The position numbers and the translations under genes are program-made. Below the pieces are notes generated by a model that was not told the DNA's origin, did not search any database, and saw only the letters and a program-made list of their open reading frames with translations. Below are positions 16,203 to 58,226 of a stretch of 64,000 nt of DNA, piece after piece (within the stretch, counting starts at the first letter, position 1; every line of letters starts with the position of its first letter). Source of the DNA: Anthoceros angustus (Eukaryota; Plantae; Anthocerotophyta); NCBI GenBank assembly GCA_010909165.1, contig MU008154.1, forward strand, positions 620,001 to 684,000, written 5' to 3'.

Positions 16203-18856
16203 ATGGAGGTACTGGCGTTTCTCCTACTCTTGGCTGGTGTCGGACTCGGTACGCTCGTTGGACAGGCCAATGCGGAAGATCCGACAGTGACATACGACTG
16301 GACTGTTGCCTACAAGATCGTGTCACCCTTGGGCGTGGCGCAGAAGGTTGTTGCTCTTCCAGCTGAATTGCCGGGTTTTATGATTGAGATGGCTCTGCTT
16401 GGAAGCGAGCTATTCGGGAGTGTGTGGTAAAGTGGAACACTTGTTGCTCTGGATAATTTGATGTCTCATTGCTCATTTGCACAGCCTTCTGGATGCAGGT
16501 GATTGCTATCAATGACAGGTTTCCGGGGCCGATTTTGAATGCAACAACCAACAACAATGTTGTGATCAATGTGCGGAATAATCTTGATGAGCCCCTGCTG
16601 TTTACCTTGTAAGTGGATGTTGACTGAGCTTTGGAGCTTTGGCTGTGTAGTCTGTGGTTCTTCGCTTCATTTGAAGTCCTATTGGTCTCGAGCTGAGGTT
16701 ACCCGCTGGCCAGGGAGCTTCCCTGTAAAATGCAGCGTGATGAGGAAATCCATATGTAATCCAGTCCTGGCGATCGATCGGCTCGGACACGCCATTCCTT
16801 TGTCGGAGCTGATCTCGTCGTGATTTCGTTTTGCAGCCAGGGAATACAACAGCGAAAAGACTCTTGGCAAGATGGAGTTTCTGGGACAAACTGCCCTATT
16901 CTGCCAGGGAAACAGTGGACATACAACATGCAATTCAAGGACCAGATTGGCACGTTCTTCTACGCTCCGTCTCTTCTGTTACAAAAAGCTGCAGGTGGCT
17001 TTGGAGGTGTACAAGTGTATAATCGGCCGGTCATTTCTGTGCCGTTTCCACCGCCGGAAGGGGACATTACTCTCCTCATTGGTGACTGGTATAAAACTGG
17101 CCATACTGTAAGTTCTGTTGTCAGACATTGTTCTCCGCTGTTCCATCCTGGTCTTGAACTTGTTGCGTATATGGAAGGCGAGTCCCCCAAACTGACTTGT
17201 TCTAGCCTTGTCATACGAGGTCTTGAGAAATATTTTAGAAAAAGGGAGCCTTCTGCCTCCACCAGATGCGATTCTGATAAACGGCAGAGGGCCAGCCGGG
17301 AGTGGGAAACACACTATTGTTGATGTGAACCCAGGTCTCTTCGATTTCCTCTTGGGAGTGGCAGCTTGGCTTCTTCAGAATCCTGCGACCTTTGTCCGCT
17401 TAAGCATTTTCTCGCAATTTTACCGATTTGAAATGTACTTGATTGTGGATGCAGGTAAAACATACCGGTTTCGGGTTTCCAATGTGGGAACCTCCACTAC
17501 CTTCAGCTTTGCTGTTCAGAGCCATAATTTTTTACTCGTGGAAGCCGAGGGCTCGTACACTCAGCAGACCACCTACACCAACTTGGATGTACACGCCGGC
17601 CAGTCTTATTCTATCCTCATAACCACCGATCAAGGCGCCGGTGACTTCTACGTTGTGGCAACCTCTCGCTTTGTTACTCCTACGATTGAAGGTGTTGCCG
17701 TGCTCCATTACACAAACTCAAAGACGAAGCCTTCTGGAGCATTCCCACCGTCTCCTGACCCGTTGGACTTCGACTCATCCATATCTCAAGCGAAAACTAT
17801 CAAGTAAGTAGTTAAATCCATGGCCTCTCGTTGTGAATCGCGGCGTGTGTAGGTGTGTTGCTGATTGGTTGATGCTCGAATTCGGATACATCAAATTTTG
17901 CACTCAATCCCTTCTGCACCTTGGTCGGTTGCCTGCGCAGATGGAACCTTACAACCGGAGCTGCTCGGCCCAACCCTCAAGGCTCCTACCACTATGGACG
18001 GATCAAAATATCCCAGACTGTCATCGTGGCCAACTCTGCCCCGGTGATGAGTGGGAAGCAAAGATATGCTGTGAACGGGGTGTCATATCTGGCACCAACA
18101 ACACCCCTGAAACTAGCTGACTATTTCAAGATCACTGGAGTATTTGAGCTGAATTCCATCCCTTCACTCCAGGAAACCAGGGCACCCTGCGATTCTAAAA
18201 CATCTATCATGGTTGGCGATTACAGATCTTTCACTGAGTTTGTTCTGCAGAATGGTGAAGACACGATTCAGTCATGGCATTTTGATGGGTACTCGTTCTT
18301 TGTTGTGGCGTAAGTGTACTAAACCCTAGGTATTGTTATTCATGGTAGGAAGCCTGTTTTTCTTATGCATGTGAGGACATGGCAACCACTTGAGGTGCCT
18401 AGAGGAAGGTTGAGCTAATTATTGTTGTCTTCCATTCTTTGGCAGTTTTGGCTTCGGAGACTGGTCCTTGAAAGCCAGAGACTCCTATAATCTTGTGGAC
18501 GCTGTTTCTCGCAGCACAACTCAGGTGAGAACTTCTTTACAAGTCTGATTGCGGCCTTGCAACGTGTAGTCGGCTGTTTTACTCCAGCTCGTTGCTGATT
18601 CGTGAGGAAGACGGTAGCATTCAGCAGTCCTGTAAGTTAAATCGTCTTTCATTCTGCAGGTTTATCCAAAGGGATACACTGTCGTCCTGGTGGCGATGGA
18701 CAATGTTGAATGTGGAACTTTCGTTCAGCACAGCTTCAGCGAGCTTATTTGGGGCAGGAGTTCTACATTCGGGTGTATGATCCTGCAGAATCTTTGAGAA
18801 CTGAGAAGGCCATTCCAGCAAATGTGCTGCTATGTGGCAAAGCAGCACGTCGCTGA
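16203..18856 (+). CDS. SKS: SKU5-similar (SKS) multicopper oxidase-like protein, 8 exons (16203-16346, 16499-16608, 16837-17107, 17220-17334, 17455-17803, 17941-18309, 18446-18524, 18660-18856); 1-bp deletion in last exon
   Basis: Signal peptide then AEDPTVTYDW, INDRFPGP, GIQQRKDSWQDGV, KDQIGTFFY, GDWYK, WNLTTGAARPNPQGSYHYG, SWHFDGYSFF. Exon 8 is 197 nt instead of 198 (gttgaatgtgg vs gttggaatgtgg in the 43.2-kb copy), so DNVGMWN is frameshifted. No GPI tail. Confidence 0.9.
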
Positions 18857-19239
18857 AGAGTCGATCTGCCTTTGCTTCAGTTCAAATAAGACACTTTTGC
18901 GTTTTGTCCACGACTCTTGTTTTGAAGCAAGGGTTGTGAACATGGTTCTTTTCTCAGCCGTGAGACGCTGAGAAGGGAGTGCTTCGGTTGGAGTTGTCGG
19001 TCATGAAATTGACCGAGTGTTAAATCAAATAGGACCCTTGTGTATGCATCTTCAGTTGCCTAGTATTCTTCAGATGCATGCTGGCTATACGATGTGCAGT
19101 CCTGAGCAGCATCTTCGTCCTACATATTTCTCTACACACACAGAAGCACGGGGAGTAGCACGGCTTCCTCACAGTCAAATGTATCCTGCGTATCGTCCAC
19201 GCCTCTGCACTGACAGGTTTGAACAATCAACATGTCTGA

Positions 19240-19486
19240 GTACATACTTGTGATGCATGTCTAGACCTGTGCGCAGTCCACACCTACATACAGTACTTAT
19301 GGACACGTACTGTACCCTTAAGGTACAGACTGTACTTGTGTGGTTGGTACTACCGTGGTACAGTATTGGTACCAACTTTAGGTACGGTTGTGGACATCGT
19401 CTTCTTCTCCCCGTCTCCGGTCTATGTACTGTAGGCCGTGACCAACCGTAATTGGTAAGTGTGTCCAAGCCACCGCAAATACGTAC
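19240..19486. promoter_or_regulatory. Dense GTAC (SBP/SPL core, copper-response element) array; TATAAAA at 19688
   Basis: 12 GTAC at 19240, 19293, 19307, 19312, 19323, 19332, 19347, 19358, 19369, 19382, 19426, 19483 (about 1 expected by chance). Confidence 0.55.
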
Positions 19487-20532
19487 ATGTCCCCAAGGTA
19501 GATTGGCAGAACCTTCTGGAACCTATGTGCTACTAGACTACTACATTGCTACTAATTCACCACACGAACGTCCTTGTGTCTGTTTGCAACAGGGCCCAAA
19601 GACGTCGGTCTTCTTCCGCCTTCCGTCAGTGCCGTTAACTCGGGAGTTACACTTAACTGACAATCCCCTCCTCGGGAATGTGTCTTTTATAAAACCCAGC
19701 CCACCCCAGCCCAGCCAGGACCAGAAACCTCTAAAACCCACAGGGTGCACGTGGAATTGGATCTTGCAAAGGGACTCGGAGTGGGCTGAAAAACATTTGA
19801 GCAGGAGCTGCGCCTCAATCTGTGAGAAAGCAATACTTAAGAGGCGGAAATCAATCCTGCAAATCTAAAACAGTATGATGGTGACGCTTGAATTGGAGGA
19901 AGACGGTATTGATCCACAAACAAGGATCATACCTTTCAGGGAAGAGGCGCTTCCGTGCCTATTATATCAATGCAAGTGGGGGACAGAGGTCTCACAGTCA
20001 TGCATTGTTCATGATGAAGACATTGGGGAGCTTACGGCACTGGTACTTTAACCATGTGCCAAGGAATACACTTGGAGGTGGTCCATTGGTACTGAGCCTG
20101 AAGAGTTTCTTATAGAAATGACGATGTTATGGCCCGGCCAATCCATGGGTCCTAGCGCACGCGCAGTATCTTCATAGATTGCCATGCTGAGCACTCCGGA
20201 TGGCAAAGTGTCCTTTGATAGCAAGACATGTCACTGAAGGCTGAGGTTGTAGACAGTTGGTAAGACTTGTAATTAGGCCCTATAATTGTGGGTAAGTGGG
20301 TGGGTCACACTATCGCTGAACCACCCACAGTCACCGCCAGCTAGCTCCAATTCTTGTGAATCGACACAAGATCTACATAAACAGTACTGAAAACGTCCAA
20401 TTAGGCTAAGGCATGTATCGGCACCGACCGCCGGAGACTCCAGCTCAAAATCGTACTTCCCCATTTGGGGTGTCGCTGGGACGGAAAACCTCACACTATT
20501 TGTCATCACTTAAGTGCCCGAGGCAGAGTTCC

Positions 20533-20662
20533 GGTCAAGGCCAGTGACGTGCGCAGCCCAAGGGCCTGCGCTCTACCAGGATTCCACAAATACGTTCAAA
20601 GTCGTCATCAGTCTACATACTTCCTTCCTTCCGGGTACCTTCCACACATGCCTGCTTATAAG
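20533..20662 (+). promoter_or_regulatory. Peptide gene promoter: W-box (GGTCAA) + TGACG element + TATA
   Basis: GGTCAA 20533, TGACGT 20545, TTATAAG 20656; same module before the other intact copies. A predicted 5'-UTR intron runs 20712-20773 (GTGAGT...CTCAG). Confidence 0.55.
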
Positions 20663-20801
20663 CCCGGCACCAGCAAGCCCTTCTCACAACTGCTACCCAC
20701 ACTCCAGACTTGTGAGTGTTCTCTTGCTCTCAGCTCATTTGCGAAATCGACAACTCTACTTACAATTCCTCAGGCAGCACTCAACTCAGTCTTCAGTGAT
20801 C

Positions 20802-21131
20802 ATGGCCATGGCGAAGCTCGTCCTCGTCCGCAACGTTCTCTGTGTCTTGATGCTTCTGGCAGCAGTGATGACTGATGCGGCAAAGATCGAGACGTTCAAC
20901 CCAGCCAGCTGTGATGGAGGTGCTACCAACACGTTCTACGTGGGCGGGAACACCTGCCAGACTTTTATCGACCAGGGCGCTGTGCGGATCAGTGAAATTG
21001 ACGGCGGCACCCGTGTGTCCATACACAACCAGAGGAACTGTGAAGGCTCCAGTAGCGTTGCACAGATTTACGGACCAGGGTGTGTGGTGCAAGGTGCAAC
21101 CAAGCTGCGCGCTGTCTGGATTCAGGGTTGA
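20802..21131 (+). CDS. Secreted 4-Cys MiAMP1-like (beta-barrelin) antimicrobial peptide, copy 1, intact, 109 aa
   Basis: Signal peptide MAMAKLVLVRNVLCVLMLLAAVMTDAA. Mature part aligns by eye to MiAMP1 (IHNQRNCEG ~ LYNQAGCSG; RAVWIQG ~ KSIFIQC). Confidence 0.75.
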   Translation: MAMAKLVLVRNVLCVLMLLAAVMTDAAKIETFNPASCDGGATNTFYVGGNTCQTFIDQGAVRISEIDGGTRVSIHNQRNCEGSSSVAQIYGPGCVVQGATKLRAVWIQG

Positions 21132-21523
21132 ACGTCGCATGTTGCGTCTTCAGAAGTATAAGTATGCATAAGGTATGCCCCATTGCAACTCTTTTATCCA
21201 ACAGAATTGCATGTACTTCTTCAAGCTCCTGCGTTTTAGAAGGAGCTATGGTTTGGTGCCTGTGGTTCTTTCGGTGATACCTGCACATTCTCAAGGCTGG
21301 GCGCCGTACCGTTTTGTGCAGGCACGAATCGGATGTAGTCACACTTAGTCATCACGTGAGATGAGCAGAGATGGGGATACCAACTAGGTGGAGCATTTGG
21401 TATAGATGTATAGGGATCTATATATGAGAATAAAACAAGTGTACCATCCGAAGAAAAGTTTTTTAATAAATAAATACTTTTTTAAATTGAATCCCACCTC
21501 TATTTAGTCAATGAAGTGCTTGC

Positions 21524-22450
21524 TTGCTCATTTGCACAAGCCTCCTGGATGCAGGTGATTGCTATCAATGATAGGTTTCCACTATGTACAGATCAAAAGA
21601 TCCCAGACTGTCATCGTGGCCAACTCTGCCCCGGTGATGAGTGGGAAGCAAAGATATGCTGTGAACGCGGTGTCATGTCTGGCACCAACAACACCCCTGA
21701 AACAAGCTGCACTATTTCAAGATCACTGAAGTATTTGAGCGAAATTCCATCCCCTTCATTCCCGGAAACCAGGGCGACCCCCCGATTTCTAAAACATCTA
21801 TCATGGTTGGCGATTACAGATCTTTCACTGAGTTTGTTCTGCAGAATGGTGAAGACACAATTCAGTCATGGCATTTTGATGGGTACTCGTTCTTTGTTGT
21901 GGCGTAAGTGTACTAAACCCTAGGTATTGTTATTCATGGTAGGAAGCCTGTTTTTCTTATACATGTGAGGACATGGCAACCACTTGAGGTGCCTAGAGGA
22001 AGGTTGAGCTAATTATTGTTGTCTTCCTTTCTTCGGCAGTTTTGGCTCCGGAGACTGGTCCTTGAAAGCCAGAGACTCCTATAATCTTGTGGACGCTGTT
22101 TCTCGCAGCACAACTCAGGTGAGAACTTCTTTACAAGTCTGATTGCGGCCTTGCAACGTGTAGTCGGTTGTTTTACTCCAGCTCGTTGCTGATTCGTGAG
22201 GAAGACGGTAGCATTCAGCAGTCCTGTAAGTTAAATCGTCTTTCATTCTGCAGGTTTATCCAAAGGGATACACTGTCGTCCTGGTGGCGATGGACAATGT
22301 TGAATGTGGAACTTTCGTTCAGCACAGCTTCAGCGAGCTTATTTGGGGCAGGAGTTCTACATTCGGGTGTATGATCCTGCAGAATCTTTGAGAACTGAGA
22401 AGGCCATTCCAGCAAATGTGCTGCTATGTGGCAAAGCAGCACGTCGCTGA
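21524..22450 (+). pseudogene. SKS pseudogene copy 2: no exon 1, start of exon 2 fused to exon 6, frameshifts
   Basis: Begins in intron 1; junction GATAGGTTTCC|ACTATG at ~21580 with CC microhomology; shares the exon-8 deletion with copy 1. Confidence 0.9.
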
Positions 22451-24324
22451 TCAAAGAGTCGATCTGCCTGTTTTGAGTCTTGTCCACGACTCTTGTTTTG
22501 AAGCAAGGGTTGTGAACATTAGTTCTTTTCTCAGCCGTGAGACGCTGAGCAGGAAGTGCTTCGGTTGGAGTTGTCGGTCATGACATTGACCCAGTGTTTC
22601 AAGGACCTCGGCTGTTTATGACACCCAAGGTCCCTGAAAGCTTTATTTGAAGCCTACTTAAGAAAATGAGGTTGTTCAAATCAAATAGGACCCTTGTGTA
22701 TGCATCTCCAGTTGCCTAGTATCCTTCAGATGCATGCTGGCTATACGATGTGCAGTCCTGAGCAGCATCTTCCGCACTACATATTTCTCTACACACACAG
22801 AAGCACGGGGAGAGCACGGCTTCCTCACAGTCGAATGGATCTTGCGTATCGTCCACGCCCCTGCACTGACAGGTTTGAACAATCAACATGCCTCAGTATA
22901 TACTTGTGATCCATATGCAGACCTGTGCGCAGTCCACACCTACATACAGTACTTATGGCACGTACTGTACCCTTTAGATACAGACTGTACTTGTGTGGTT
23001 GATACTACCGTGGTATTGGTTCCAAACTCAGGTAAGGTTGGTGGACATCGTCTCCTTTTCCCCGTCTCCGGTCTATGTACTATAGGCCGACGGGTTGGAG
23101 ACCGCAGGCCCCCACGCCAGCCACCTACATACGTACTATGTACATCTGTAAGTAACCAACCGTAATTGGTAAAGTGTGTCCAAGCCACCGCAAATATGTA
23201 CGAGTCCCCAAGGTAGATTGGCAGAACCTTCTCGAACTTATGTGCTACTAGACTGCTACATTGCTACTAAGTCACCACATGAACGTCCTTGTGTCTGTTT
23301 GCAACAGGGCCCAAAGACGACGGTCTTCTTCCGCCTTCCGTCAGTGCCGTCAACTCAGGAGTTTCACTCAACTGACAATTCCCTACTTGGGAATGTGTCT
23401 TTTATAAAACCCAGCCCACCCCACCCCAGCCAGGACCAGAAACCTCTAAAACCCACAGGGTACACGTGGAATTGGATCTTGCAAAGGGACTCGGAGTGAG
23501 CTGAAAAACATTTGAGGACGAGCTGCTCAATTTGTGAGAAAGCAATACTTAAGAGTATGTTCAGCAACTCTTGGTAGGTGTTTCGGCTACCTCGGTTGCT
23601 CCTTCCTTTCCTTCGGTAGTCCCTTCCACTGCAAATCTAAAACATACGATGGTGACACTTGAATTGGAGGAAGATGGTATTATCCACAAACAAGGATCAT
23701 ATCTTTCAGGGAAGAGGCGCCTCCGTGCCTTTCAGATCAATGCAAGTGGGGGACAGAGGTCTCACAGTCATGCAAAGTTCATGATGAAGAGGCATTGGTA
23801 CTTTAACCATGTGCCAAGAAATACATTTGGAGATGGTCCATTGGTACTGAGCTTGACGAGTTTCTCATAGAAACGACGACACAAACAGTACCGAAAACGT
23901 CCAATTAGGCTAAGGCATGTATTGGCACTGACCGCCGGAGACTCCAGCTCAAAATCGTACTTCCCCATTTGGGGTTTCGCTTTGTTACTGGGGCACAAAA
24001 CCTCACAATATTTGTCATCACTTAAGTGCCCGAAGCAGAGTTCCGGTCAAGGCCAGTAATGCGCGCAGCCCAAGGGCCTGAGCTCTACCAGGATTCCACG
24101 AATATATTGAAAGTCGTCATCAGTCTACATACCTCCTTCCTTCCTTCCGGGTTACCCACCTTCCACACATGCCTGCTTACAAGCCCTGCACCAGCAAGCC
24201 CTTCCCACAACTGCAATCCACACTCCAGACTTGTGAGTGTTCTCTGTCTGCTCTCAGCTCATTTGCGAAATCGACAACTCCACTTACAATTCCTCAGGCA
24301 GCACTCAACTCGGTCTTCAGCGAC

Positions 24325-24688
24325 ATGGCCATGGCGAAGCTCGTCCTCGTCCGCCACGTTCTCTGTGTCTTGATGCTTCTGTCAGCAGTGATGACTGATG
24401 CGGCAAAGATCGAGACGTTCAACCATCACTGATGCGGCAAAGATCTAGACGTTCAACCCAGCCAGCTGTGATGGAGGTACTACCAACACGTTCTACGTGG
24501 GCGGGAACACCTGCCAGACTTTTATCGATCAGGGCGCTGTGCGGATCAGTGGAATTGATGGCAGCACCCGTGTGTGCATACACAACCAGAGGAACTGCAA
24601 AGGCTACAGTAGCGTTGCACAGATTTACGGACCAGGGTGTGTGGTGCAAGGTGCAACCAAGCTGCGCGCTGTCTGGATTCAGGGTTGA
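24325..24688 (+). pseudogene. MiAMP1-like peptide copy 2, disrupted
   Basis: A 31-bp duplication plus 3 nt (actgatgcggcaaagatc(g/t)agacgttcaacc x2, ~24393-24458) gives KIETFNHH-stop. Confidence 0.88.
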
Positions 24689-25331
24689 ACGTCGCATGTC
24701 GCGTCTTCAGAAGTACAAGTATGCATAAGGTATGCCCCATTGCAACTCTTTTATCCAACAGAATTGCATGTACTTCTTCAAGCTCCTGCGTTTTAGAAGG
24801 AGCTATGGTTTGGTGCCCGTGGTTCTTTGGGTGATGATACCTGCACTTTCTTTAAGGCTGAGCGCCGTGCCGTTTTGTGCAGGCACTAATCGGATGTGGA
24901 CACATTGGTCATCACGTGAGATGAGTAGAGTTGGGGATACCAACTAATGGAGCTTTTGGCATAGATTTTTTTTTTAATTTGATATTTTGAACATAAATCA
25001 AAACAACCCCGAGGGAGAAATCTTCAGCAAGGGTTCTGATTCCCCTATGTTACACATCCTATCTTTTGGCATAGATGTATAGGGATCTATATATGAGAAT
25101 AATACAAGTGTACCATCTGAAGAAAAGTTTTTAATAAATAAATATTTTTTTTAATTAAATCCCACCTCTATTTAGTCAGTGAAGTGCTTGCTTGCTCATT
25201 CGCTCAGCCTTTGGATGCACGTGATTGCTATCAATGATAGGTTTCTGGGGCTGATTTTGAATGCAACAACCAACAGCAATGTTGTGATCAATGTGTGCAA
25301 TAATTTTGATGAGCCCCTGGTGTTTACCTTG

Positions 25332-27813
25332 ATGATGATGATGATCTTTTAGAGAGTGTCGTGAGATCACCACAAAGAGTCTCGCACGATGACCACACAC
25401 AAAAGAGGTCGGTGTGCCTAGGTAGACGAGAATGACTTTTATTAGACTAGGACGACTTTTTATGAGAACAAACTTGCCCAACCGGCCTGAAAGATTATTA
25501 TTTTTTGCCCAACCGGCTTGAAAGATTGAATGACTTTTATTAGACTAGGACGACTTTTTATGAGAACAAACTTTCCCAACCCGCCTGAAAGATTATTATT
25601 TTTTGCCCAACTCGACTGAAAGATTATTATTTTTTGCCGAACTGGCCTAAAAGATTACAATATTATTTTTTGCCCAATTAGAGGGTGAATTATGGATCCG
25701 AGCAAGGTGAGGATTATACAAAGCCCATCAATCCACGGAAGGGTGTCAAGTTCTAGTAAGAGTGCGATTGTATGGATCCGAGCAAGGTGAGGATTATACA
25801 AAGCCCATCAATGCGGAAGGGTGTCAAGTTCCGATATGAGTGCGGTTGTGTGGATCCAGACAAGGCGAGATTATACAAAGCCTATCAATCCGCGGAAGGG
25901 TGTCGTCCAGCATACCGCGATATGTGAAAGATTTCCTCCTCCAATAGACCCAAGGATCTGCCGGTCTATATAACTCCATATTGTGCAACATCCCCACCGT
26001 ACGCATCTGCTCAAGAATGCTATTTATCAAGTAGGCGAGATCAGTCAAAGCCTAGTGGACCTCTGCTTGGCTTTTGTATCCTCTGGTGAATTCCGCACGT
26101 TCCTTTCAGGTTGGCTATGGCTCGAGAGCCAACCTCGTGTGACTTTGATACCCTGGAAATTGTTGACTATGCGAATAAAGTGTTTTGGGATACTGTGATG
26201 GAAGTTGTCTCTTTAACACTTCTTGAATACAACAATTAATACAAAAGTTATTCAATTGGAAACAAGGGTGATCTGGGTCCTCTTCTAAGTGTGAAAAGGG
26301 CCGTACTGCAAGTCATTGTTAGACTTGGGGGCCATATGTATAGATGCTATGCACTTAGTGGACAACAATCATGCAAAAGACTTAGTGGACAAAGCTATGC
26401 GTTAAGCTAGCAGAGGTAAGGCCACATATAACTCATAAATTTGGATTAAAGTTTAATGCAAAGGTATCACAACTTAACAGAAGATAATATTGTAAAGATC
26501 ATCTATATGTTATAATAAATACGTATTAATCTTATGATAGTAAAGGTAATACATATTGACCATTTTTAACTTGAAAAGACTATATGCACAATGATTTGTG
26601 TGAAACCATAAAATACTTACAATACCCGTATTCCACCCTGTGATGTTCATGTAGTACCGTGTAATACGTTAGTGTGTGGACGTTTAACAAACTTTTCTTC
26701 TTCTTATTGTAGTTTTTAAATAAGAATGTGCATAATACATAATCCATCTTAAAGATAGTCCATGCCACTCTATATACCTAGTTAATATTCGGCTACACTA
26801 CTAGCAGATGTACAATCCTAAGCCCAATGATAAAAAGAAGAGGCTGGCTATTACAATGCAAAGCCCATTGATAGAAATAAGTAATTCAATTCCATTCAAT
26901 TCAATGAAAGTGGTCTCATGCATACAACTCCTTAGCCGCAATCAAGCATGCCCTAACTCAAGCATGATACTATAGACCACAACCATTACATTTTCCTTTT
27001 TCGTAATCAACAGCATAGGCCACAACCATCACTTTTTCCTGTTTTGTTATATCTATTCGTTATGTTAGGTTCATCTGATGAGCTCGTTAGAGTTGGGTTA
27101 GTGGACAAGGCTAGGGCGGTTTGAACAAACCGAGAGCACATGACACAAATTTGAATTGGAAAATGAGAATCGAAATGAAGACTGGCAAAGTCAAACGGGT
27201 CGAGTAAATCTACTTGTCGCCCACGACAGCCCTAAAAGATTGTGAAAGGATGATTTCCCATCCCAGCATCTACCTGGGACGACTTTTACTAGACTAGGAC
27301 GACTTTTTATAAGAACAAACTTACCCAACCGGCCTGAAAGATTATTATTTTTTGTCTAACCAGCCTGAAAGATTATTATTTTTTTGCCTAACCGGCCTGA
27401 AAGATTATTATGTTTTGCCTAACCAGCCTGAAAGATAATTATTTTTTGCCTAACCGGCCAGAAAAATTATTAATTTTTGCACGACTTTTTATGAGAACAA
27501 ACTTGCCCAACCGGCCTAAAAGATTATTATTTTTTGCCAACTAGCCTGAAAGATTATTACTTTTTGCCCAACCGGCTTGAAAGATTGTGAAAGGATGGTT
27601 CTCCATCCCAGCATCTACTTGAGATAATTTTTACTAGACTAGGATGATTTTTTACCAAAACCAACTAGCCCAACCGACCTGCAAGATTACTAGTTTTTGC
27701 CCAACCGGGCTGAAAGATTGTGAAAGGATGGTTCCCCATCCAGCATTGGTCCGCCTGTACGGCGCTTAATTGTGGAATTCTTATGTCACCTGGTGTATGT
27801 GCACTCGAGGATG
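25332..27813 (-). mobile_element. 5S-rRNA-derived SINE-like element, internally expanded, inserted in SKS exon 2
   Basis: TSD ACCTTG (25326-25331 / 27814-27819). Minus-strand 5' head 27813-27728 has about 70% identity by eye to plant 5S (TACACCAG, AATTAAGCGCC box A, GGATGGGG box C). (CAT)n tail at the other end; internal ~30-bp tandem repeats and a ~1.55-kb insert (25680-27233). Confidence 0.7.
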
Positions 27814-30392
27814 ACCTTGTAAGTGGATGTTGACTGCGCTTTGGAGCTTTGGAATCCAATCCTGGCGACCGATTGGCTCGAACACGCCATTCCTTTGTCG
27901 AAGCTGATCTCGTCGTAATTTCATTTTGCAGCGAGGGAATACAACAGCGAAAAGACTCTTGGCAAGATGGAGTTTCTGGGACAAACTGCCCTATTCTGCC
28001 AGGGAAACAGTGGACATACAACTAAAGAGACCACTAGAGCGAATGAATTTGCATTGATGGATCAAGGTATTTATACAAGTGTGTTCGTGTAATTGCTGAG
28101 CCGTTGATATTCTACGAAGTAACCTGCCTAACTATGTAAACTGAAGCTTAAACATTATTTTCCAGGCATCTATGTGAAACGTACCCTAGCTCGGATCCGC
28201 CAGTGACTGTATTGCGCTATGTCGCAACACTCCCCCTCGCTGCTGATCCTGAGCTCATCATTCCCCTCGCGTGTAGGATGGGGTTGTGTGTCATCGCAAT
28301 TGCTGATTGGTTGTTGCAGAGCAACTTGGTTGGCCGATCTTGCTTCTGGTTGATGTCACTTCGGAACTGCCGAATCCACAGGATTTCCTTCGCAGCTGGG
28401 GATGTAACTGCGTACTCTGCCTTCGTGGACGACAAGCACATGGTTTGCATCTTCTTGCAGCCCCAGGAGACAAGCCCATGATTGATGAGCATACAATAGG
28501 CTGCAGTGGACTTCCGAGCGTCTGGATCACCTGCCCAATCTGCGTCGGAGTAGGAGGTTAGTGTGAGTTTGCAAGATGGGTCACCTCTGTATACCAATCC
28601 GAGTGTCTTGTGGCCCTTCAGGTAGCGGAGAATGCGCTTCACGCTGGTCCAATGGGCCCTTCCTGGGTTGGAGAGATATCTTGATGCAATGTTGATAGCT
28701 TGGGAGATATCTGGCCTGGTCCTGATTGCCAGATACAGAAGGCTACCCACAGCTTCACTGTAGGGCACTTGTGACATCTCTTGGGCCTCCTCCGAGTTGA
28801 AGGCGATCCTCCATGGATATCTTCTCACCAGATGCGATGGGAGTTGAGACAGGTTTGGCATCCTTCAATTTAAATCTTTCGAGCAGCTGATCGACATAGT
28901 GTTCTTGATGTATGAAGAATGAGCTGTTCACAGGGTTGTGTTCAAACTGCACTCCGAGGGCAAATCGAAGGGGTCCCATGTCGACTACTTCGTACTTCTT
29001 TGACAGCAGGTCTTTGACTTCTTGTATTGCAGCAAGGCTGTTCCCAAAGATAAAGTTGTCATCAACATACAGGGTGATGATGACAAGTTTGCCTTGTTCT
29101 TGCAGGACATAAACGCTGGTGTCGGAGGGCAGTGAGGTGAAGCCGCATTTCTTCAAGTACAAGTCGACAGTCTCGTTCCACACTTGTGCTGATTGATTCA
29201 AGCCGTATATGGACTTGAGGAGCATGCACACTTAGGAGCTGTCCTTGATGAAGCCTGGCAGTTATAGCATATAGATGTCATCATGTAGAGTGCCGTATAG
29301 AAATGCTGATTTAACATCTACCTGGTGTATGTGCAGGTGATGATGGGCTGCAAAGGCTAGCAGTATTCGGATTGAGATTGCTTTAACCACAGGACTGAAG
29401 AGTCTATTCTCTTCATAATCAAAGCCTGGTACCTGGGTGAAACCACGGGCTATCAGTCTGGCCTTATACCTGGATACTGTACCATCTGGATTGAGCTTCC
29501 TGCGAAAAGTCCACTTGCATGATGTAGGCTTTCTACCAGCAGGTAAGTCTGTGAGCTTCCAGGTTTTATTGGCAATTAAAGAGTCGTACTCTAACTTGAC
29601 TGCTGCGGTCCATTCAGGTGTACTGAGTGCCTCTTGGATGTTGGCAGGGACATCTTGCATCTCTATTGCAGAGAGAGCGTGATAAAGGGCAAGCTAAACT
29701 GGATCATTATCAGGGGCTTGTGCTGGTGCTGGCACATCTTCAGGTCGAATGGCTGTATGACGGGAAAATGACTCTCTAGGAACAGAAGGTGGATTCCTCC
29801 ATAGATGACTTGGTGGTCGATTGCATGTAGAACGCTATTGGATAATATTGTTTAGATCATACCTAACTCTAGTTAAGAGTATCGTTTGATTAATTAATTA
29901 GGGTTACTTTAGAAAAAAACGGTTACACTTCTTCTTTATGTACCTTTTGATTGATTCACGATGACATTCTCATCCGCACACACGCTCCTCAGCATCTGGT
30001 CCTTATGCTTCTTAATCTATGATGTCCGTGTGATGCCCATATCACAAATCGGTATCAGAGCCATTCTGAATCATGCCGTCGTTCGGTATTACCAATGCCC
30101 CGCGTCATTGGATCAAGGCCGCAATTTTAATTGACCCAAGGAAGCGGGAACGGCGGCTTGTTTCCAACATTCTACGATGTCTCAGGAGCGCAATTAGGCG
30201 TCTTTCTCCCTGATGTTGATAGGGATGGACAAGACAAACGCTCTCTCCAGAGACAGATCTACATTAGAACACGCAAGTAATTTTGGCAGGCACAAAGCAA
30301 ATGGGAGTGCTTTGAGAGAAAGCACAAGTGACTTGCTTACAAATATGCCTTGCAGGAGGAATGACAGCAGATTCCAACATTGCTGTTTTTCT

Positions 30393-32727
30393 TTTCCTTT
30401 GCAAGCCTGTTGTAATCAGCCAGCACGTGAATACACTTGCTGTCATCAGCAGTATGCACAGACTCCTACACGATGCAATAGTTTAGTTTTTCCTGTCCAG
30501 AGTAAAGACCCAGCACTCCTGGCCATTAAGAACCTCAGATCACACTTAAGACTTTTGCAAGAATACACATGTGTAGTAAAACATAGTCATAAGAAAGAAC
30601 TGATCTCTTTGCACAAACAAATTGGAGTTTTGACTAAGCAATTTACACGACTGTCAAATGACTTTGCTAACTTAGGACTAGTTGCTGCAACCCGTCTTCA
30701 TACAAACAAATTACCTGACATCTCCTGTTCATATTCTTCCTACGGCTGCATGCTCATGCCTGAACCCATTGAACAGGTCTTAGAGTCTCTCTTCACCATG
30801 TTTGGGAAAGATCCCAATACTGTCTGACCCCTTTGCCATTAGGTCAGCGAGGCTAATTGTAGCATAGCCTTATTTTGCATGTGGTCTCCTCCAAACAGAT
30901 CTTTACATTATATCCCACGTTTTCCCAGACCAGTCCCTTTTCCTCACACAGTACAAACCATGGCTATAGGAGGAGGTGGTAGCACTAGTACCATCATTAA
31001 CAATACCACAAAAATTGACTTCAAAGACCGAGATCGGTTTAATGGAACTGATTACCCAGTCTGGGAGATGCGGATTACGGCGTTGCTGGAGGAGCATGAC
31101 CTAATGGATATGGTCCTTGGAAAAGTAGCCAAGCCGATTGATGTTGATAAGCTGACCGTCTGGAACAAACAGGATAAGCGAGCTAGAAGTATTATACTTT
31201 CCTTTGCAAGCTCTTAAATCACCAAAGACGTGAATACACTGTCATCAGTAACAGATGCATCTACACGATGCAATAGTTTAGTTTTTCCTGTCGAGTAAAG
31301 ACCCAAAGACTCGGCCATTAAGAACCTCGATCACACTTAAGACTTTGCAAGAATACACACATGTAGCAAAACATAATCATAAGAAAGAACTGATCTCTTT
31401 GCACAAACAAATTGGAGTTTTGACTAAGCAATTTACACGATCACATGACTTTGCTAACTTAGAACTAGTTGTCGCAACCCGCCTTCATACAAACAAATCA
31501 CCGACATCTCCTGCTCATTCCTCCTACGGCCACTTGCTCATGCCTCGAACCCATTGAACAAGTCTTAGAGTCTCTCCACCATGTTTGGGAAGATCCCAAT
31601 CTTGTCGACCCCTTAGCCATTAGGTCACGAGGCTAATTGTAGCATAGCCTTATTTTGCATGTGGTCTCCTCCAAGATCTTTACATTATATCCCACGTTTT
31701 CCTGCATCCCTTTTCCTCACACAAGACAAACCATGGCTATAGGAGGAGGTGGTAGCACTAGTACCATCATTAACAATACCACAAAATTGACTTCAAAGAC
31801 CGAGATCGGTTTAATGGAACCGATTACCCAGTCTGGGAGATGCGGATTACGGTTCTTTGGAGGAGCATGACCTAATGGATATGGTCCTTGGAAAAGTAGC
31901 CAAGCCGATTGATGTTGATAAGTCCGTCTGGAACAAACAGGATAAGCGAGCTAGAAGTATTATACTTTCCTTTGCAAGCTCTTAAATCACCAAAGACGTG
32001 AATACACTGTCATCAGTAACAGATGCATCTACACGATGCAATAGTTTAGTTTTTCCTGTCGAGTAAAGACCCAAAGACTCGGCCATTAAGAACCTCGATC
32101 ACACTTAAGACTTTGCAAGAATACACACATGTAGCAAAACATAATCATAAGAAAGAACTGATCTCTTTGCACAAACAAATTGGAGTTTTGACTAAGCAAT
32201 TTACACGATCACATGACTTTGCTAACTTAGAACTAGTTGTCGCAACCCGCCTTCATACAAACAAATCACCGACATCTCCTGCTCATTCCTCCTACGGCCA
32301 CTTGCTCATGCCTCGAACCCATTGAACAAGTCTTAGAGTCTCTCTCACCATGTTTGGGAAGATCCCAATCTTGTCGACCCCTTAGCCATTAGGTCACGAG
32401 GCTAATTGTAGCATAGCCTTATTTTGCATGTGGTCTCCTCCAAGATCTTTACATTATATCCCACGTTTTCCTGCATCCCTTTTCCTCACACAAGACAAAC
32501 CATGGCTATAGGAGGAGGTGGTAGCACTAGTACCATCATTAACAATACCACAAAATTGACTTCAAAGACCGAGATCGGTTTAATGGAACCGATTACCCAC
32601 CGGGAGATGCGGATTACGGCAGGGAGCATGACCTAATGGATATGGTCCTTGGAAAAGTAGCCAAGCCGATTGATGTTGATAAGTCACCGAACAAACAGGA
32701 TAAGCGAGCTAGAAGTATTATACTTTC
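30393..32727 (+). repeat. Triplication of a ~770-800 bp leader/gag-start segment inside Copia B
   Basis: Junction ATTATACTTTCC|TTTGCAAGC recurs at ~31200 and ~31970; copies 2 and 3 are near-identical and share small deletions relative to copy 1. Confidence 0.9.
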
Positions 32728-35700
32728 CGCACTGGACAAGAATATGATTCAGCATACCCAAGGCCAAGCTACATCAACCGAAGTATGGAAGGTTTTCACG
32801 GACCTATTCGCAGCTAAGGACTCCATGTCCTTAGTTAATGCAACTAGATTACTATACGCTCTCCGTATGAAAGATACGGACAACATTGAGCATCATGTGC
32901 ATAAATTCCGCACCTTGAGAGCCAAGCTCGCCTCTTGTGGCCAGGACCTGACTGAACCACCAGCAGTAGTTGCTCTTTTAACGTCACTTCCACCCAGCTA
33001 TAGGGCTTTTGTCAGCACGCAGACTTCCATCACCAGGCAAGGTGCTGCTGGTGCTGCAACAACAGTGGCACAAATTGTTGGAGCCCTGCTTGAGGAGGAG
33101 TCAAGAGGACAGGATCAACGTGGACGTACTCAACATCACAACTCGCAAGTTCTTTTTACCTCCAGGGGACGTGGGCGAGGTCGAGGTCCTTACAGGCCAC
33201 CTTTCCAATCCAGGAGACCCTACACTTCACCCTCCTTTCCACAGACGCAGCGAAAGGTTAAAGGTACATGTCACTGGTGTCGAATACCAGGACATTTTGA
33301 GCATGAGTGTAGAAAAAAGCATTGGGGAACCCAGGCGAGAAGCTCCTCCTGGAGGAGAATCACACCTAGTGACTCATGGACAAACCTAGTGACATGTGGT
33401 TTCTCGATTCTGGCGCAACAAACCACATATGCCAACTGCGAGAGAAGTTCATCACTTACACTGCCACTTCGTCTAGTCAATTTGTGCTGCTCGGCGATGA
33501 CAGTGGGTTGGCCGTAGCAGGCTTAGGAGAAGTCCTGTTACCCCTGGGAGGAGACAAAGAGATACATCTTGTGAACGTACTCCATGTACCCAGCATGACT
33601 AAGAACTTGCTATCTATACGAAAGCTTATTTCTGACCATGAGCTACAAGTAGTTTTTACACCTACTGGCTGCATGGTTACATCAGCATATGATACACCCC
33701 TCCTACTTGCAACGGGAGTGGTATATCATGACCTATATAGGTTTGAGGCTGTATCTTCAGCAGCCCGCTCATTAGTTATTGACACTCGACCTGATGTGGA
33801 TAAGACTTTGCTCTGGCACTGTCGCATGTGTCACCCCAGCATCACCTACATACGACAGCTGGTTGGTAAGCCAAAACTATATAAAGATGCTTTAACATTT
33901 AAAGTTCGATCACCTTTTGAGAAGCTCAAGTAGGGAAGATGGCTCGAAGCCATATAATGACCCTGAGCCTACAAAAGCAGCAGGCCTTCTCGATGTGGTC
34001 CATTCTGATATATGTGGACCCATGTCCACGAGCTCTTTTGGTGGAGCTATCTATTTTTTAACCTTTCTGGATGAATGGAGTCACTTTTGCACCTTATATT
34101 TCCTGCATGGCAGACACCAAACATATGACAAGTTTGTAGAATACGTGCACATGGCTGAAACACAAACTGGAAAAACACTAAAGAGATTGTGGAGTGACAA
34201 TGCACCAGAGTACCTCAGCCATGATTTTCCGTCCTTCTGTCAGGAGAAAGGAATCATCCACCAACTTACTATGCCACACCACCTTGCACAAAACTCTTTC
34301 GCAGAACGTTACAACTGCACGTTACAGGAAAGATGCAGGGCTACACTCTCATTGGCAGGCCTGACCAGAGGATACTGGGCCGAAGCTATTGCAGCTGTAA
34401 ACTATGTTCATAATAGACTGCCAGCAAAGCCCTTATTTGATCACACACCTTTTGAGAGATGGCATACTTCTAAACCTCGAATCAGCCATCTTCGTATTTT
34501 CGGTTAGCATATGCTTATGTACCTGCTGACAAGAGAGGAAAGATGGATAATCGGGCAACCAAGCACATTTTGTCGGCTATTCTGACACTTCCAAAGGTTA
34601 TAGGCTCTACAACCCTTACACTAAGCAACTTACCTTGGCCCGTAGTGTTAGCTTCAATGAGAGTTTTATTCTGAATGCACATCTCCAGTCCTCCACTAGC
34701 CATGAGCCTCTTCCACAACCTTCCTTGTATGGCCACCTTCCATTAGATCGGTCCATTGATAATACAACGATTTTAATCGATGTGGTTGAATTCTTACGAT
34801 CTTATTAAACCACACCAAGAGCTTGTCCCCATTCTAGCACATCAATGATCGGTTGTTAGATGCGCCTGACATAATTTAGTGGATGAATTAGACCAACCAC
34901 ACAATATTTTAGTGGACGATTTAGACCAACTGCAGACTTACGGATCCACATTGACTTACCAATAGAGGCTCCAGCTATGACACCTTTGAGAAGATCAGCC
35001 AAGTCACATCGCCCTCGTGAAAGAGTGGCTTAATCCACCTTATTCACATGGTGATACTTTTACCTATCAATCACAGCCAGATCATGTAGCACAACCTCGT
35101 GCGAGTCTTTCAGCTTTTGCTTATGCAGCAGCATCTTCTGTCCTAGATCCCCTGACACACCACTCACCTATCAAGAGGCATTGTCTGGTCCTCAAAAGGC
35201 AGAATGGCAGAAAGCTATTGATTCAGAATATAACAGTCTTATATCAAACAAGACATGGGAGTTGGTAACCTTGCCACCAGATCGAAAACCCATCACATCC
35301 AAATGGGTTTTCAAATTGAAGCTCCATCCAGACGGGTCAGTAGCCCGCTATAAGGCCAGGTTAGTGGCGAGGGGCTACACTCAGGTCCATGGTCTGGATT
35401 ACACAGAGACCTTTAGCCCAGTTGTAAAGCCAACGTCTATGCGTATATTACTCTACTATGCTGTCAAACATAAGTTAATTGTCCATCAAATGGACGTGAA
35501 GACCGCATTTTTAAATGGAGATCTTACCGAGGTGATTTTTATGAACCAGCCTGAGGGCTATATTGTCGATCACACCAAGGTATGTAGACTCCTGAAATCC
35601 CTGTATGGATTAAAACAGTCAGCATGCCTATGGAATTCACGTGCTAATAAGAAACTATGCAAGCTGGGTTTTGTACCTCTAGCTGCTGATTGCAGCGTCT

Positions 35701-35787
35701 ATGTCCTCAAGAAGACCAATGAGATATGCATCATTGCTTTGTATGTTGATGATAATTTCATCTTAGGTGACAACGGATCGACCTACA

Positions 35788-37257
35788 TCAAGCGAGAACT
35801 CTCCCAGGAGTGGGACATGACTGATATCGGACCTTTAAAGTTTGCACTTGGAATTCAGTTTGCTTTTGATATGGGCAGGACTTGTGTATGTATTCATCAA
35901 TCACATTTTATACGTCAGCTTCTCACTAAATTTAATCTGCTGGATGTAAACCCAGTCTCTACTCCAGTTTCCACTAGTGACAAGCTATCTATTAAGGACA
36001 CCCCAACTACTAATAGTGAACGAGCAGCTATGTCAACTATACCCTATAGAGAGGCAATTGGGAGCCTTTTATATTTAGCTAGCTGGACTCGTCCAGATAT
36101 TTCCCAGGCTGTCGGTATAGTCTCACGCTTCCTCAGCAACCCTGGACAAAAGCATTGGGTCGCTGTGAAACGTATCCTTCGTTATTTGAAAGGGACCCAA
36201 CACATGTATATGCAGTATTCACAACATGGCAGCAGTATTCTTACCTCGTTTTCTGATGCCGACTGAGCAAGGGACATTGATTCTCGGAAGTCTATAGTAG
36301 CTTATTGTGTCCTGCAAGGTTCAGCAATCAGTTGGCAATCAAAAAAGTTATCCATCGGTCTCTCCTCAGCAAGGCGGTATGGTGCTCTTTCACTTGTTGC
36401 CGTGAGATCACTTGGGTCGACGGTTTCTTGATGGTATTCAGGAGCAACTCGAGCAACCACATTGCGACAACCAACCAGCTATCGGCGTCCCCATCCTGCA
36501 CGCGATCAAAGCATATTGAGATTCAATTTCATTTTATCCATCAAGCGAGAACTCTCCGAGTGGGACATGGTGATGTCGGACCTTTAAAGTTTGCACTTGG
36601 CATTCGGTTTGCTTTTGATATGGGCAAGACTGTATGTATTCATCAATCACATTTTATACGTCGACTTCTCACTAAATTTAATCACTGGATGTAAACCCGT
36701 CTACTCCAGTTCCACTAGTGACAAGCTATCTATTGAGGACACCAACTACTAATGAACGAGCAGCTATGTCAACTATACCTTAGAGGCAATTGGGAGCCTT
36801 TTATATTTAGCTCTGGACTCGTCCAAATATTTCCCAGTTTTCGGTATAGTCTCACGCTTCCTCAACCACGGACAAAAGCATTGGGTCAGTGAAACGATCC
36901 TTCGTTATTTGAAAGGGACCCAACACATGTATGCAGTATTCACAACATGGCAGATTCTTACCTCGTTTTCGATCGGGCGAGGGACATTGATTCTCAAGTC
37001 TATAGTATTGTGTCCTGCAAGGTTCAGCAATCGTTGGCAATCAAAAAGTTATCCATCGGTCTCTCCTCAACCGAGGCGGTATGGTGCTCTTTCACTTGTT
37101 GCCGTGAGATCACTTGGGTCAGACAGTTTCTTGATGGTATTCACCGAGCAACTCGAGCAACCACATTGCGACAACCAACGACTATCGGTGGCGGCCAACC
37201 CCATCCCGCAGCGATCAAAGCATATTGAGATTCAATTTCATTTTATCTGTCAAGCAG
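35788..37257 (+). repeat. Duplication of ~750 bp of RT/RNase H inside Copia B
   Basis: Junction at ~36540 joins RNase H (TTTATCCATCAAGC) to RT (ACATCAAGCGAGAAC) over CATCAAGC. Confidence 0.88.
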
Positions 37258-43200: not shown

Positions 43201-43748
43201 GCGATGGACAATGTTGGAATGTGGAACTTTCGTTCAGCACAGCTTCAGCGAGCTTATTTGGGGCAGGAGTTCTACATTCAGGTGTATGATCCTGCAGAAT
43301 CTTTGAGAACTGAGAAGGCCATTCCAGCAAATGTGCAGCAATGTGGCAAAGCAGCACGTCGCTGAAGAGTCGATCTGCCTTTGCTTCATTTCAAATAAGA
43401 CACTTTTGCGTTTTGTCCACGACTCTTGTTTTGAAGCAAGGGTTGTGAACATTAGTTCTTTTCTCAGCCGTGAGACGCTGAGAAGGGAGTGCTTCGGTTG
43501 GAGTTGTCGGTCATGAAAATGAGGGTCATGAAAATGAGGTTGTTCAAATCAAATAGGACCCTTGTGTATGCATCTTCTGTTGCCTAGTATTCTTCAGATG
43601 CATGCTGGCTATACGATGTGCAGTCCTGAGCAGCATCTTCTGCACTACATATTTCTCTACACACACACAAGCACGGGGAGTAGCGCGGCTTCCTCAGTCA
43701 AATGGATCTGCGTATCGTCCACGCCTGCGCAGTCCACACCTACATACA

Positions 43749-46695: not shown

Positions 46696-46825
46696 CAATG
46701 GGGTAACATTTAACGAGGTCAGAGAGTCTCACGGGGTAACATTTAGCGAGGTATGTATGTACTTTTCAGAGAGTCTCGCGGGGTAACATTTAGGGAGGTA
46801 TGTATATATTTTTCAGAGAGTCTCA
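46696..46825 (+). repeat. ~47-bp tandem repeat x3 at the tail of the short 5S-derived element
   Basis: cagagagtctc(a/g)cggggtaacattta(g)cgaggtatgtat...tttt repeated. Confidence 0.8.
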
Positions 46826-47051
46826 CGCGATGACCACACACGAGCGAGATCGGCGCGCCAAGGTAGACCGGGACGACTATTACCAGAATAAATTTGCTCA
46901 ACCGGGCTGATTTATCCAGCTGGGCTAAAAGATTGTGAAAGGATAATTCCCCATCCCAGCATTGATCTTCCCCATCCCAGCATTGATCTGCCCCTACATT
47001 GCTTAACTGTTAAGTTCTTAATGTCCCCTGGTGTATATGCACCCCACGATG
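46810..47051 (-). mobile_element. Short (~240 bp) member of the 5S-derived SINE-like family
   Basis: Both ends homologous to the 25332-27813 element without its expansions. Minus head TACACCAG...AGAACT..ACAGTTAAGC...CTGGGATGGGG matches the 5S boxes. Confidence 0.65.
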
Positions 47052-47752
47052 AGGTACATATATCACTTGTCAAATATGAGTAAAAACATAAAAATAATGT
47101 AAATTGGTCAGGGAAAACTTCAGGTGTTCCAAGTGGTGTTACTGTATCTCCTTGTCGGAGGGCTAAAGACTTGCGTCGTTTACGGTCACACGGTGTGACG
47201 ACGACGATTGGAGCCCGACTCCCAAGAGAGTGCGACGGCAGCCGGATAATATGCTACGTGGTGACGACGGTTGTGAAAATCTTCCACATGAAGGCCAAAG
47301 CGAATAGGCACCGAGCGCCGAAGTGTGTAGGCGTAATTCAAGTGGACTTCACCATTTGGCCTGTCAGTTTGTAACTGGGCCACAAGGTGCACGGCACGTC
47401 AGTCATCTGCAGAGCACAAACTTGAATGAGGTCAAGGCTCGTGACGTGCCATGCGGAGCCTGCCGAAGGACCTTACTGCTACCACGAATCCGTTGAAAGC
47501 GTGAGTCTACACGCCTCCTTCCTTCCTTCGCGGTACCTTCCGCTAACGCCCCTTTATAAGGCCCGGGAACCAGCAAGCTTTTCCCACAACTGCAATCCAG
47601 ACTTCTGTTCCTGCTCTCAGCTTACGAGTTTGCGAGCTCAACAGCTCCACTTACAGTTCCGCAGTGTTTCTGCTCTCAGCTTACTTGCGAGCTCGACAGC
47701 GCCACTTACAATTCGGATTCGCCAGTCATTCAGGGTTCCCGCTTCAGCGACC

Positions 47753-49020: not shown

Positions 49021-49067
49021 ACCTTCGAATGCACTTCTGCGCACCAACTCAAATCTTTTGAATTTAT

Positions 49068-56100: not shown

Positions 56101-56358
56101 GTGGTTCTTTCGGTGATACCTGCACTTTCTTTAAGGCTGAGCGCCGTACCGTTTTGTGCAGGCACTAATCGGATGTGGACACATTGGTCATCACGTGAGA
56201 TGAGCAGAGTTGGGGATACCAACTAATGGAGCTTTTGGCATAGATGTATAGGGATCTATATATGAGAATAAAACAAGTGTACCATCCGAAGAAAAGTTTT
56301 TTAATAAATAAATACTTTTTTTTAAATCCCACCTCTATTTAGTCAATGAAGTGCTTGC

Positions 56359-56497
56359 TTGCTCATTCGCTCAGCCTTTGGATGCAGGTGATTGCTATCA
56401 ATGATAGGTTTCTGGGGCTGATTTTGAATGCAACAACCAACAATATGTTGTGATCAATGTGTGCAATAATCTTGATGAGCCCCTGGTGTTTACCTTG
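56359..56497 (+). pseudogene. SKS copy 4: intron 1 end plus exon 2 fragment
   Basis: Same TTGC junction and same SINE insertion point as copy 3. Confidence 0.85.
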
Positions 56498-58226
56498 ATG
56501 ATGATGATGATCTTTTAGAGAGTGTCGTGAGATCACCACAAAGAGTCTCGCGCGATGACCACACACGAAGGAGGTCGGCATGCCTAGGTAGACGGGAATG
56601 ACTTTTACTAGACTAGGACGACTTTTTATGAGAACAAACTTGCCCAACCGGCCTGAAAGATTATTATTTTTTGTCCAACCGGCTTGAAAGATTATTATTT
56701 TTTGCCCAACTCGACTGAAAGATTATTATTTTTTGCCGAACTGGCCTAAAAGATTACAATATTATTTTTTGCCCAATTAGAGGGTGAAGCGTATTATGGA
56801 TCCGAGCAAGGTGAGATTATACAAAGCCCATCAATCCACGGAAGGGTGTCAAGTTCTAGTAAGAGTGCGATTGTATGGATCCGAGCAAGGCGAGATTATA
56901 CAAAGCCCATCAATCTGCGGAAGGGTGTCAAGTTCCAGTAACAGTGCGGTTGTGTGGATCCAGACAAGGCGAGATTATACAAAGCCTATCAATCCGCGGA
57001 AGGGTGTCACGTCCCAGTACCAGTGCGATATGTGAAAGATTTCCTCCTCCAATAGACCCCGAAGACAGATCTGCAGTCTATATAACTCCATATTGTGCAA
57101 CATCCCCACCGTACGTATCTGCTCAAGAATGCTATTTATCAAGTAGGCGAGATCAGTCAAAGCCTAGTGGACCTCTGCTTGGCTTTTGTATCCTCTGGTG
57201 AATTCCGCACGTTCCTTTCAGGTTGGCTATGGCTCGAGAGCCAACCTCGTGTGACTTTGATACCCTGGAAATTGTTGACTATGCGAATAAAGTGTTTTTG
57301 GATACTGTGATGGAAGTTGTCTCTTTCACTTCTTGAATACAACAATTAATACAAAAGTTAATCAATTGGAAACAAGGGTGATATGGGTCCTCTTCTAAGT
57401 GTGAAAAGGGCCATACTGCAAGTCACTGTTAGCCTTGGGGGCCGTATGTATAGATGCTATGGACTTAGTGGACAACAATTATGCAAAAGACTTAGTGGAT
57501 AAAGCTATGCATTAAGCTAGCAGAGGTAAGGCCACATATAACTCATCTATTTGGATTAAATTTTAATGCAAAGGTATCACAACTTAACAGAAGATAATAT
57601 TGTAAAAGATTATATATATTTTATAATAATATACGTATTAATCTTATGATAGTAAAGATAATACATATTGACCATTTTTAACTTGATAAGACTATATGCA
57701 CAATGATTTGTGTGAAACCATAAAATACTTACAATACCCGTATTCCACCCTGTGAGGTTCATGTAGCTTGCTAACGTATAATAATACGTTAGTGTGTGGA
57801 CATTTAACAAACTTTTCTTCTTCTTCTTGTAGTTTTTAAATAAGAATGTGCATAATACATAATCCATCTTAAAGATAGTCCATGCCACTCTGTACACCTA
57901 CTTAATATTCAGCTGCACTACTAATTGATGTACAATCCTAAGCCCAATGATAAAAACAAGTGGCTGGCTATTACAATGCGAAGCCCATTGATAGAAATAA
58001 GTAATTCAATTCAATGAAAGTGGTCTCATGCATAAAACTCCTTAGCCGCAGTCAACCGTGCCCTAACTCAAGCATGACACTATAGACCACAACCATTACA
58101 TTTTCCTTTTTCGTAATCAACAACATAGGCCACAACCGTCACCTTTTCCTGTTTTGTTATATCTATCCGTTATGTTAGGTTCATCTGATGAGCTCGTTAC
58201 ACTTAGGTTAGCGGACAAGGCTGGGG
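56498..58226 (-). mobile_element. Duplicate of the tail side of the 5S-derived element, cut by a Gypsy LTR
   Basis: Colinear with 25332-27110; interrupted at aaggctgggg|TGTCTTGCG. Confidence 0.85.

Follow-up and report, generated by a model that had tools for sequence, protein, structure and literature searches.

SINEs are non-coding retroposons of ∼100–700 bp, with an A-rich or simple-repeat tail and a target-site duplication (TSD) of variable length. To our knowledge, the SINEs described from plants are all derived from tRNA. SINEs related to 5S rRNA are known from animals and fungi, and include zebrafish SINE3, AmnSINE1, MEG-RS, HaSE3, 5S-Sauria and AfuSINE3 (PMC10946416, PMC10886601, PMC5063351), those of fungi being reported from Aspergillus (PMC5063351). 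A first-pass annotation of the DNA studied here put forward a 5S-headed family as possibly new for plants. This agrees with a 2024 review, which knows of no 5S-derived SINEs in plants and finds the 5S promoter there only in Cassandra LTR elements (PMC10946416), and a full-text search covering 2023–2026 brought up no report of a plant 5S-derived SINE. Kojima (2024) relays the speculation that Cassandra itself arose via insertion of a SINE3 into an LTR (PMC10886601).

Here we analyse an insertion of 2.48 kb in the window, by which we mean the whole 64,000-nucleotide stretch of plant DNA under study. We read it, with a probability of roughly 0.65, as an old and inactive SINE-type copy belonging to a family whose unit is ∼240 bp and whose first ∼90 nt are a diverged 5S internal control region (∼17–96). 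The annotation had called it a 5S-headed non-LTR retroposon of the SINE3 type; the non-LTR insertion and the 5S-promoter-like head stand, whereas the SINE unit of 2,482 bp and the 5S-like RNA do not. A short, non-coding retroposon like the SINE3 elements of animals and fungi, the family shares with them a 5′ end that resembles the 5S internal promoter, a body of unrelated sequence, a tail that is A-rich or made of a simple repeat, and a TSD that varies in length. It differs from them in its plant host, in an 11-nt non-5S leader ahead of the core, and in that just 5S ∼17–96 can be recognized, too diverged for Rfam. With Cassandra (vascular plants) and Ajax (nemerteans) it shares a 5S ICR core (A-box, IE and C-box) without the 5S fold (PMC10853983, PMC10886601). 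Those, however, are LTR elements, and their paired LTRs, PBS/PPT, TG..CA ends, 5-bp TSD and mid-LTR position of the core are features not seen here.

The insertion and its internal structure

On the plus strand, an exon of a SKU5-like multicopper-oxidase paralog stops exactly at 25331 (paralog exon end at 16606–16609; tblastn, plant fragments), and the next host exon lies at ∼27861–28022 (tblastn). Matches to the paralog flank the element on both sides (16469–16609 versus 25192–25331, 91%; 16755–16927 versus 27850–28022, 95%). In the neighbouring copy of the host gene, the target site is empty and reads ACTTACAAGGTAAACA (16590–16620, minus strand); the filled site reads ACTTACAAGG / TCATCCTCGAG...ATCATCATCATCATC / AAGGTAAACA. 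Comparison of the two sites shows that 25331–27814, a span of 2,484 bp whose sense strand is the minus strand, is one real insertion, which bears out the annotation on this point. The TSD is AAGG (4 bp), or CAAGG (5 bp) when the tail's final C is included; a TSD had been claimed correctly, but at a length of 5–6 bp. Read on the minus strand, the long copy begins TCATCCTCGAGTGCACATACACCAGG… and finishes …CTCTCTAAAAG(ATC)5, and this last stretch (25331–25345) is the (CAT)n tail of the earlier description. The element went in antisense, within the final 4 nt of the exon and before the GTAAGT donor, and the insertion destroyed the splice-site-adjacent exon end of this multicopper-oxidase paralog. 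Features of the locus and of its relatives are collected in Table 1.

Table 1. Features of the long copy, its target site and related sequences in the window
Feature	Position	Strand	Basis or remarks
Whole insertion	25331..27814	-	TSD-bounded; filled versus empty paralogous site
TSD, 5′ copy	27815..27818	-	AAGG on minus strand; CCTT on plus strand, the host exon's final 4 nt ahead of the GTAAGT splice donor
Head	27725..27814	-	11-nt leader TCATCCTCGAG and 5S-like core aligned to 5S 17–96; nhmmer, plant-5S profile
Reiterated SINE-body modules	27219..27724	-	TRF, pattern search, self-BLAST
Putative nested 1,542-bp insertion, non-coding	25677..27218	.	TGGGC flanks inside VNTR unit; TRF; direct reading against the 31-bp unit
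Second 31-bp/98-bp body-repeat block	25450..25676	-	TRF, self-BLAST
SINE 3′ region common to sister copy	25346..25449	-	…GTGTGTGGTCATCGYGYGAGACTCT…; 77% identity over 74 nt
(ATC)5 simple-repeat tail	25331..25345	-	Sequence reading, TRF
TSD, 3′ copy	25327..25330	-	AAGG; filled versus empty site comparison
Empty paralogous target site	16590..16620	-	Neighbouring host-gene copy, without insertion
Sister copy, unit length 238 bp	46815..47052	-	Leader, 5S-like core, body and 3′ region as in long copy; nhmmer 5S match 47021–46971
Segmental duplicate of filled locus	56232..58226	-	91% identity to 25063–27116 including flank; identical 3′ junction

The SKU5-like multicopper-oxidase copies form a tandem array (16400–25200, 41280–46000 and 47400–56300) of ∼3.55-kb units that are 85–100% identical, and several of these copies are broken or shortened by transposable elements. 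Parts of a Ty1/copia element occupy 30050–36300 (PBS-like site at 30050, gag at 32636–33517, RT at 35181–36266), and a second Ty1/copia gag lies on the minus strand at 40071–40688. A 3.9-kb segment at 58539–62427 is bounded by long inverted repeats (∼58539–59109 and 61885–62427; 93–100% complementary) and has ORFs inside (60546–61587). In protein searches, the best identity was 70% for the multicopper-oxidase exon and 48% for the closest database relative of the copia RT, with the best named matches of these searches coming from ferns, a liverwort and angiosperms. For four ORFs of the window, look-ups of the exact protein found no record.

The first-pass annotation took the span 25332–27813 as the SINE unit. 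A length of 2.48 kb does not represent the unit: this is a copy of the ∼240-bp type that has grown through tandem repetition of its own body and through a nested insertion of 1,542 bp. Only positions 1–114 and 2325–2439 of the long element are collinear with the 238-bp unit of the sister copy (self-BLAST). The interior holds two additional partial C-box+body units (27614–27580 and 27269–27232) and a 31-bp VNTR, AATAATAATCTTTCAGGCCGGTTGGGCAAAA, of ∼8.5 copies (27327–27586; TRF). The 31-bp units derive from the element's own body and form a second array at 25474–25657, and the terminal ∼22-nt unit of the 3′ region is doubled. The 1,542-bp piece, which includes a 78-bp tandem repeat (25691–25904; TRF), shows no similarity elsewhere in the window except to the segmental duplicate. 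On either side of it stands the 5-bp duplication TGGGC (27223–27219 and 25676–25672), and deleting the piece together with one TGGGC recreates the interrupted 31-bp unit, as read from the sequence. From this duplication we infer that the piece probably entered later, as a nested insertion.

Alternatively, the 2.5-kb element could have been mobilized whole, as a composite retroposon made of head, VNTR, unique region and SINE tail. Hominid SVA offers a parallel, with its SINE-derived ends, internal VNTR and unique region, and length in the kb range. A single TSD encloses the entire 2,484 bp, the VNTR is built from the element's own body, and the internal region is already present in the segmental duplicate, all of which would fit such a composite. 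Against it, the unique 1,542 bp lies within a repeat unit and has its own TGGGC duplication, which is what a piece nested later would show, and no other long copy in the window is independent, since the 56-kb copy has an identical junction. Moreover, stretches of at least four T occur 13 times on the sense strand of the long copy, starting from position 155, and hence the 2.5-kb sequence cannot be one Pol III transcript. Unlike in SVA, the length is better explained by tandem amplification after insertion plus the nested piece, and we see no sign of mobilization as a unit. We regard the composite as improbable, and retain the reading of a ∼240-bp SINE-type copy that was enlarged in place.

Similarity of the heads to 5S

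A comparison with RF00001, which the annotation had named as a check on its 5S alignment, turned out negative. Rfam gave no match at all, 5S included, for the whole window at the gathering score, nor for either head at E ≤ 10, with an E-value multiplied over 4,227 families, such that weak 5S-specific similarity could stay hidden. A profile HMM was built from plant 5S genes and run with unfiltered nhmmer over the whole window on both strands (128 kb), the references being angiosperm-like and not the host's own. These references came from a scan of bacterial assemblies with a 22-nt plant 5S motif, which led to 33 small contaminant contigs; of the 33, 20 were checked, and RF00001 genes scoring 90–116 bits were present in every one, giving 14 distinct angiosperm-type sequences. 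The 33 bacterial assemblies, GTDB species representatives, each include a plant 5S rDNA contig of 0.3–0.85 kb, evidently through contamination.

The top three profile matches lie at 63085–63024 (E 0.011), 27804–27732 (E 0.033) and 47021–46971 (E 0.12), and the next has E 6.3. All three are at the 5′ ends of SINE-like elements, in sense orientation and in one register (5S 17–98). Taken singly, the copies score low (long head 9.7 bits, sister 7.9 bits), with marginal E-values of 0.03–0.12 per window, and the window, reversed as a decoy, gave up to 7.8 bits. Together with the lack of an Rfam match at E ≤ 10, and with the failure of a structural model to detect the heads (see below), these values favour another view of the elements: that they are SINE-like or other LINE-dependent retroposons whose 5S likeness reflects chance or convergence, any promoter being of other origin.

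We consider chance or convergence doubtful, given that the three best matches in 128 kb share position, orientation and register. In 300 block-wise dinucleotide shuffles of the window, the top match reached at least 9.7 bits once. Three matches of at least 7.9 bits occurred in 0/300 shuffled windows (best third match, 6.1), a comparison in which the three heads probably share ancestry and are not fully independent samples. When the long and sister heads are aligned to each other, leaving 5S out, and made into a profile, the real 5S consensus reaches 15.0 bits with it, and none of 5,000 shuffled decoys exceeds 6.0; adding the 63.1-kb head as a third changes these values to 19.4 and 6.7 bits. 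Jointly, then, the two copies are nearer to 5S than each is alone, as expected from a 5S-derived ancestor. The shuffles and the two-copy profile uphold the significance of the 5S match on which the annotation relied.

Against plant 5S, the long head has 49 identities over 5S 17–96, with three 1-nt indels over 74 columns, and its A-box to C-box distance is within 1 nt of that in 5S, much as the annotation had put it (∼49/69, box spacing kept). The A-box-like AATTAAGCG matches at 9/15 positions, the IE at 4/6 and the core of the C-box-like GGATGGGG at 7/10, in the original order, where we assume for the A-box and IE the positions of the Xenopus numbering. The canonical plant C-box, AGGATGGGTG (PMC10853983), is retained as GGATGGG in three of three heads. 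The blocks best conserved among the heads, RTTAAGC and GGATGGGG, coincide with the A-box and C-box cores, which also argues against chance. When the plant genes were used to build a covariance model that includes the 5S structure, it missed the heads and returned trivial GC hairpins only, and RNA folding of heads and tails was no different from that of shuffles. Judged from the sequence, the 5S-like part is the promoter region only (5S 17–96), a remnant of that region and not a 5S-like RNA.

The window's best 5S-profile match belongs to a different SINE-like element (62860–63115, minus strand). After its head, GAACTCAGAGTTAAGC…GGATGGGG, come a GGCC-TTAAAA-GGCC hairpin and a stretch rich in CTT; a TSD search at this element found none. 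It resembles the long/sister family in the 5S-like core and in common departures from 5S (GGATGGGG; GATCA for GAGTA). The similarity is limited to the ∼50-nt core (E 0.096), whereas body, 3′ region and tail differ.

Related copies and class of element

A ∼240-bp sister copy with a 5S head of its own had been claimed at 46810–47051, and was recovered as a unit of 238 bp (46815–47052, minus strand). It is 79% identical to the long copy over 85 nt of the head and 77% identical over 74 nt of the 3′ end, and its C-box module is doubled within the 5S-like core. Common to both copies are the body motif ATCCTTTCACAATCTTT and the 3′ region GTGTGTGGTCATCG.G.GAGACTCT (…GTGGTCATCGYGYGAGACTCTCTGAAAAG). Both also have a T4 run inside the unit, a point against our reading. 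In the sister copy, the tail is A5 and the TSD, of ∼11 bp, is imperfect (ATATATGTACC / ATATACATACC). That tails and TSD lengths differ between the copies (4–5 versus ∼11 bp) fits target-primed reverse transcription, not an integrase. In size, the sister copy fits the SINE range at 238 bp, and the long copy, at 2,484 bp, exceeds it via internal amplification and the nested insert. The 3′ junction of the sister copy (last ∼15 nt, TSD and ∼17 nt of flank, forming a 46-bp unit) is present three times in tandem at about 46700–46830 (minus strand).

The sequence at 56.2–58.2 kb holds the flank, the tail, the 3′ repeats and most of the nested insert; the head is missing, with the breakpoint inside the element. 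It has the flank of the 25-kb locus and an identical 3′ junction, which rules it out as an independent insertion. The long/sister family thus accounts for two independent insertions, plus one segmental duplicate, in the 64-kb window. No partner LINE with the family's 3′ end was found in the window, where the three SINE copies are the only places with the 3′ motif. A metagenome scan with a 20-nt body motif gave 12 matches, all of them chance and matching the pattern only, and scans of viral contigs with the tail motif and with a 5S motif gave none. Protein words taken from the conserved frame in the 3′ part of the SINE, searched for in order to find spurious ORFs in other copies, likewise brought up none.

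Cassandra is the known 5S-bearing element of plants and also keeps only a ∼70-bp ICR core (PMC10853983), and the TSD of the long copy can be read as 5 bp. One might on this basis take the copies for solo LTRs of a Cassandra-type TRIM. Several features speak against this. The elements carry their 5S core at the 5′ end and not in the middle of an LTR; the termini are TC…TC (TC…ATC for the long copy) and not TG…CA; and the tails (simple repeat versus A-run) and TSD lengths (4–5 versus ∼11 bp) differ. The first and last ∼100 nt of the long copy are unrelated, with no terminal direct repeats (self-BLAST), and the head motif was found just twice in the window, 19 kb apart. No PBS was found in or adjoining the elements, the sole tRNA-Met-type PBS-like site being the one at 30050, in the copia element. 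Solo LTRs are, in our estimation, highly improbable. Absence of a terminal direct repeat, of TG..CA ends and of a PBS led us to reject Cassandra/TRIM as the class of the long copy; the annotation had likewise seen no TG..CA LTR pair, and its proposed search for paired LTRs and a PBS came out in the same direction.

A Helitron was ruled out by the presence of a TSD and by a 3′ end of (ATC)n rather than CTRR, and a TIR DNA transposon by the absence of inverted self-matches or TIRs in the long copy (self-BLAST). ARAGORN detected no tRNA-like part in the element, and the long copy is without an ORF above ∼70 aa. The TSD, the simple-repeat tail, the absence of an ORF and of LTRs or TIRs, and the short sister copy support a non-LTR, non-autonomous retroposon-type insertion. 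As far as sequence comparison goes, the element is a candidate plant SINE3: the SINE-type insertion is real, statistics support the likeness of its head to the 5S promoter, and a Pol III role for this head is putative.

Proposed history of the locus and its significance

The family would have spread by target-primed reverse transcription, in which element RNA is copied into a nicked target by a LINE reverse transcriptase; such a process would leave target duplications that vary in length and tails that are A-rich or made of a simple repeat. After insertion, the element's own 31-bp body motif and its C-box+body modules may have been amplified in tandem. Next, a foreign 1,542-bp piece would have entered one repeat unit, generating the 5-bp TSD TGGGC. 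Last, part of the locus was presumably duplicated segmentally to 56.2–58.2 kb.

The broader proposition is that genuine 5S-promoter SINEs (SINE3) exist in a seedless-type plant, where at least two families share only a 5S-derived core of ∼50–80 nt. We would give this even odds. If true, the promoter module has been exchanged between SINE families or recruited twice, and elements of this kind are what has been postulated as the 5S donor of Cassandra. The present locus is worn and bloated, and as an example it is of use chiefly for its proven empty site. As no plant SINE3 has been shown so far, a family of plant SINEs whose head is of the 5S type would close a gap, and would supply the missing donor type for Cassandra. 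Such a family would also allow study of the way in which a plant retroposon puts a TFIIIA-dependent promoter to new use.
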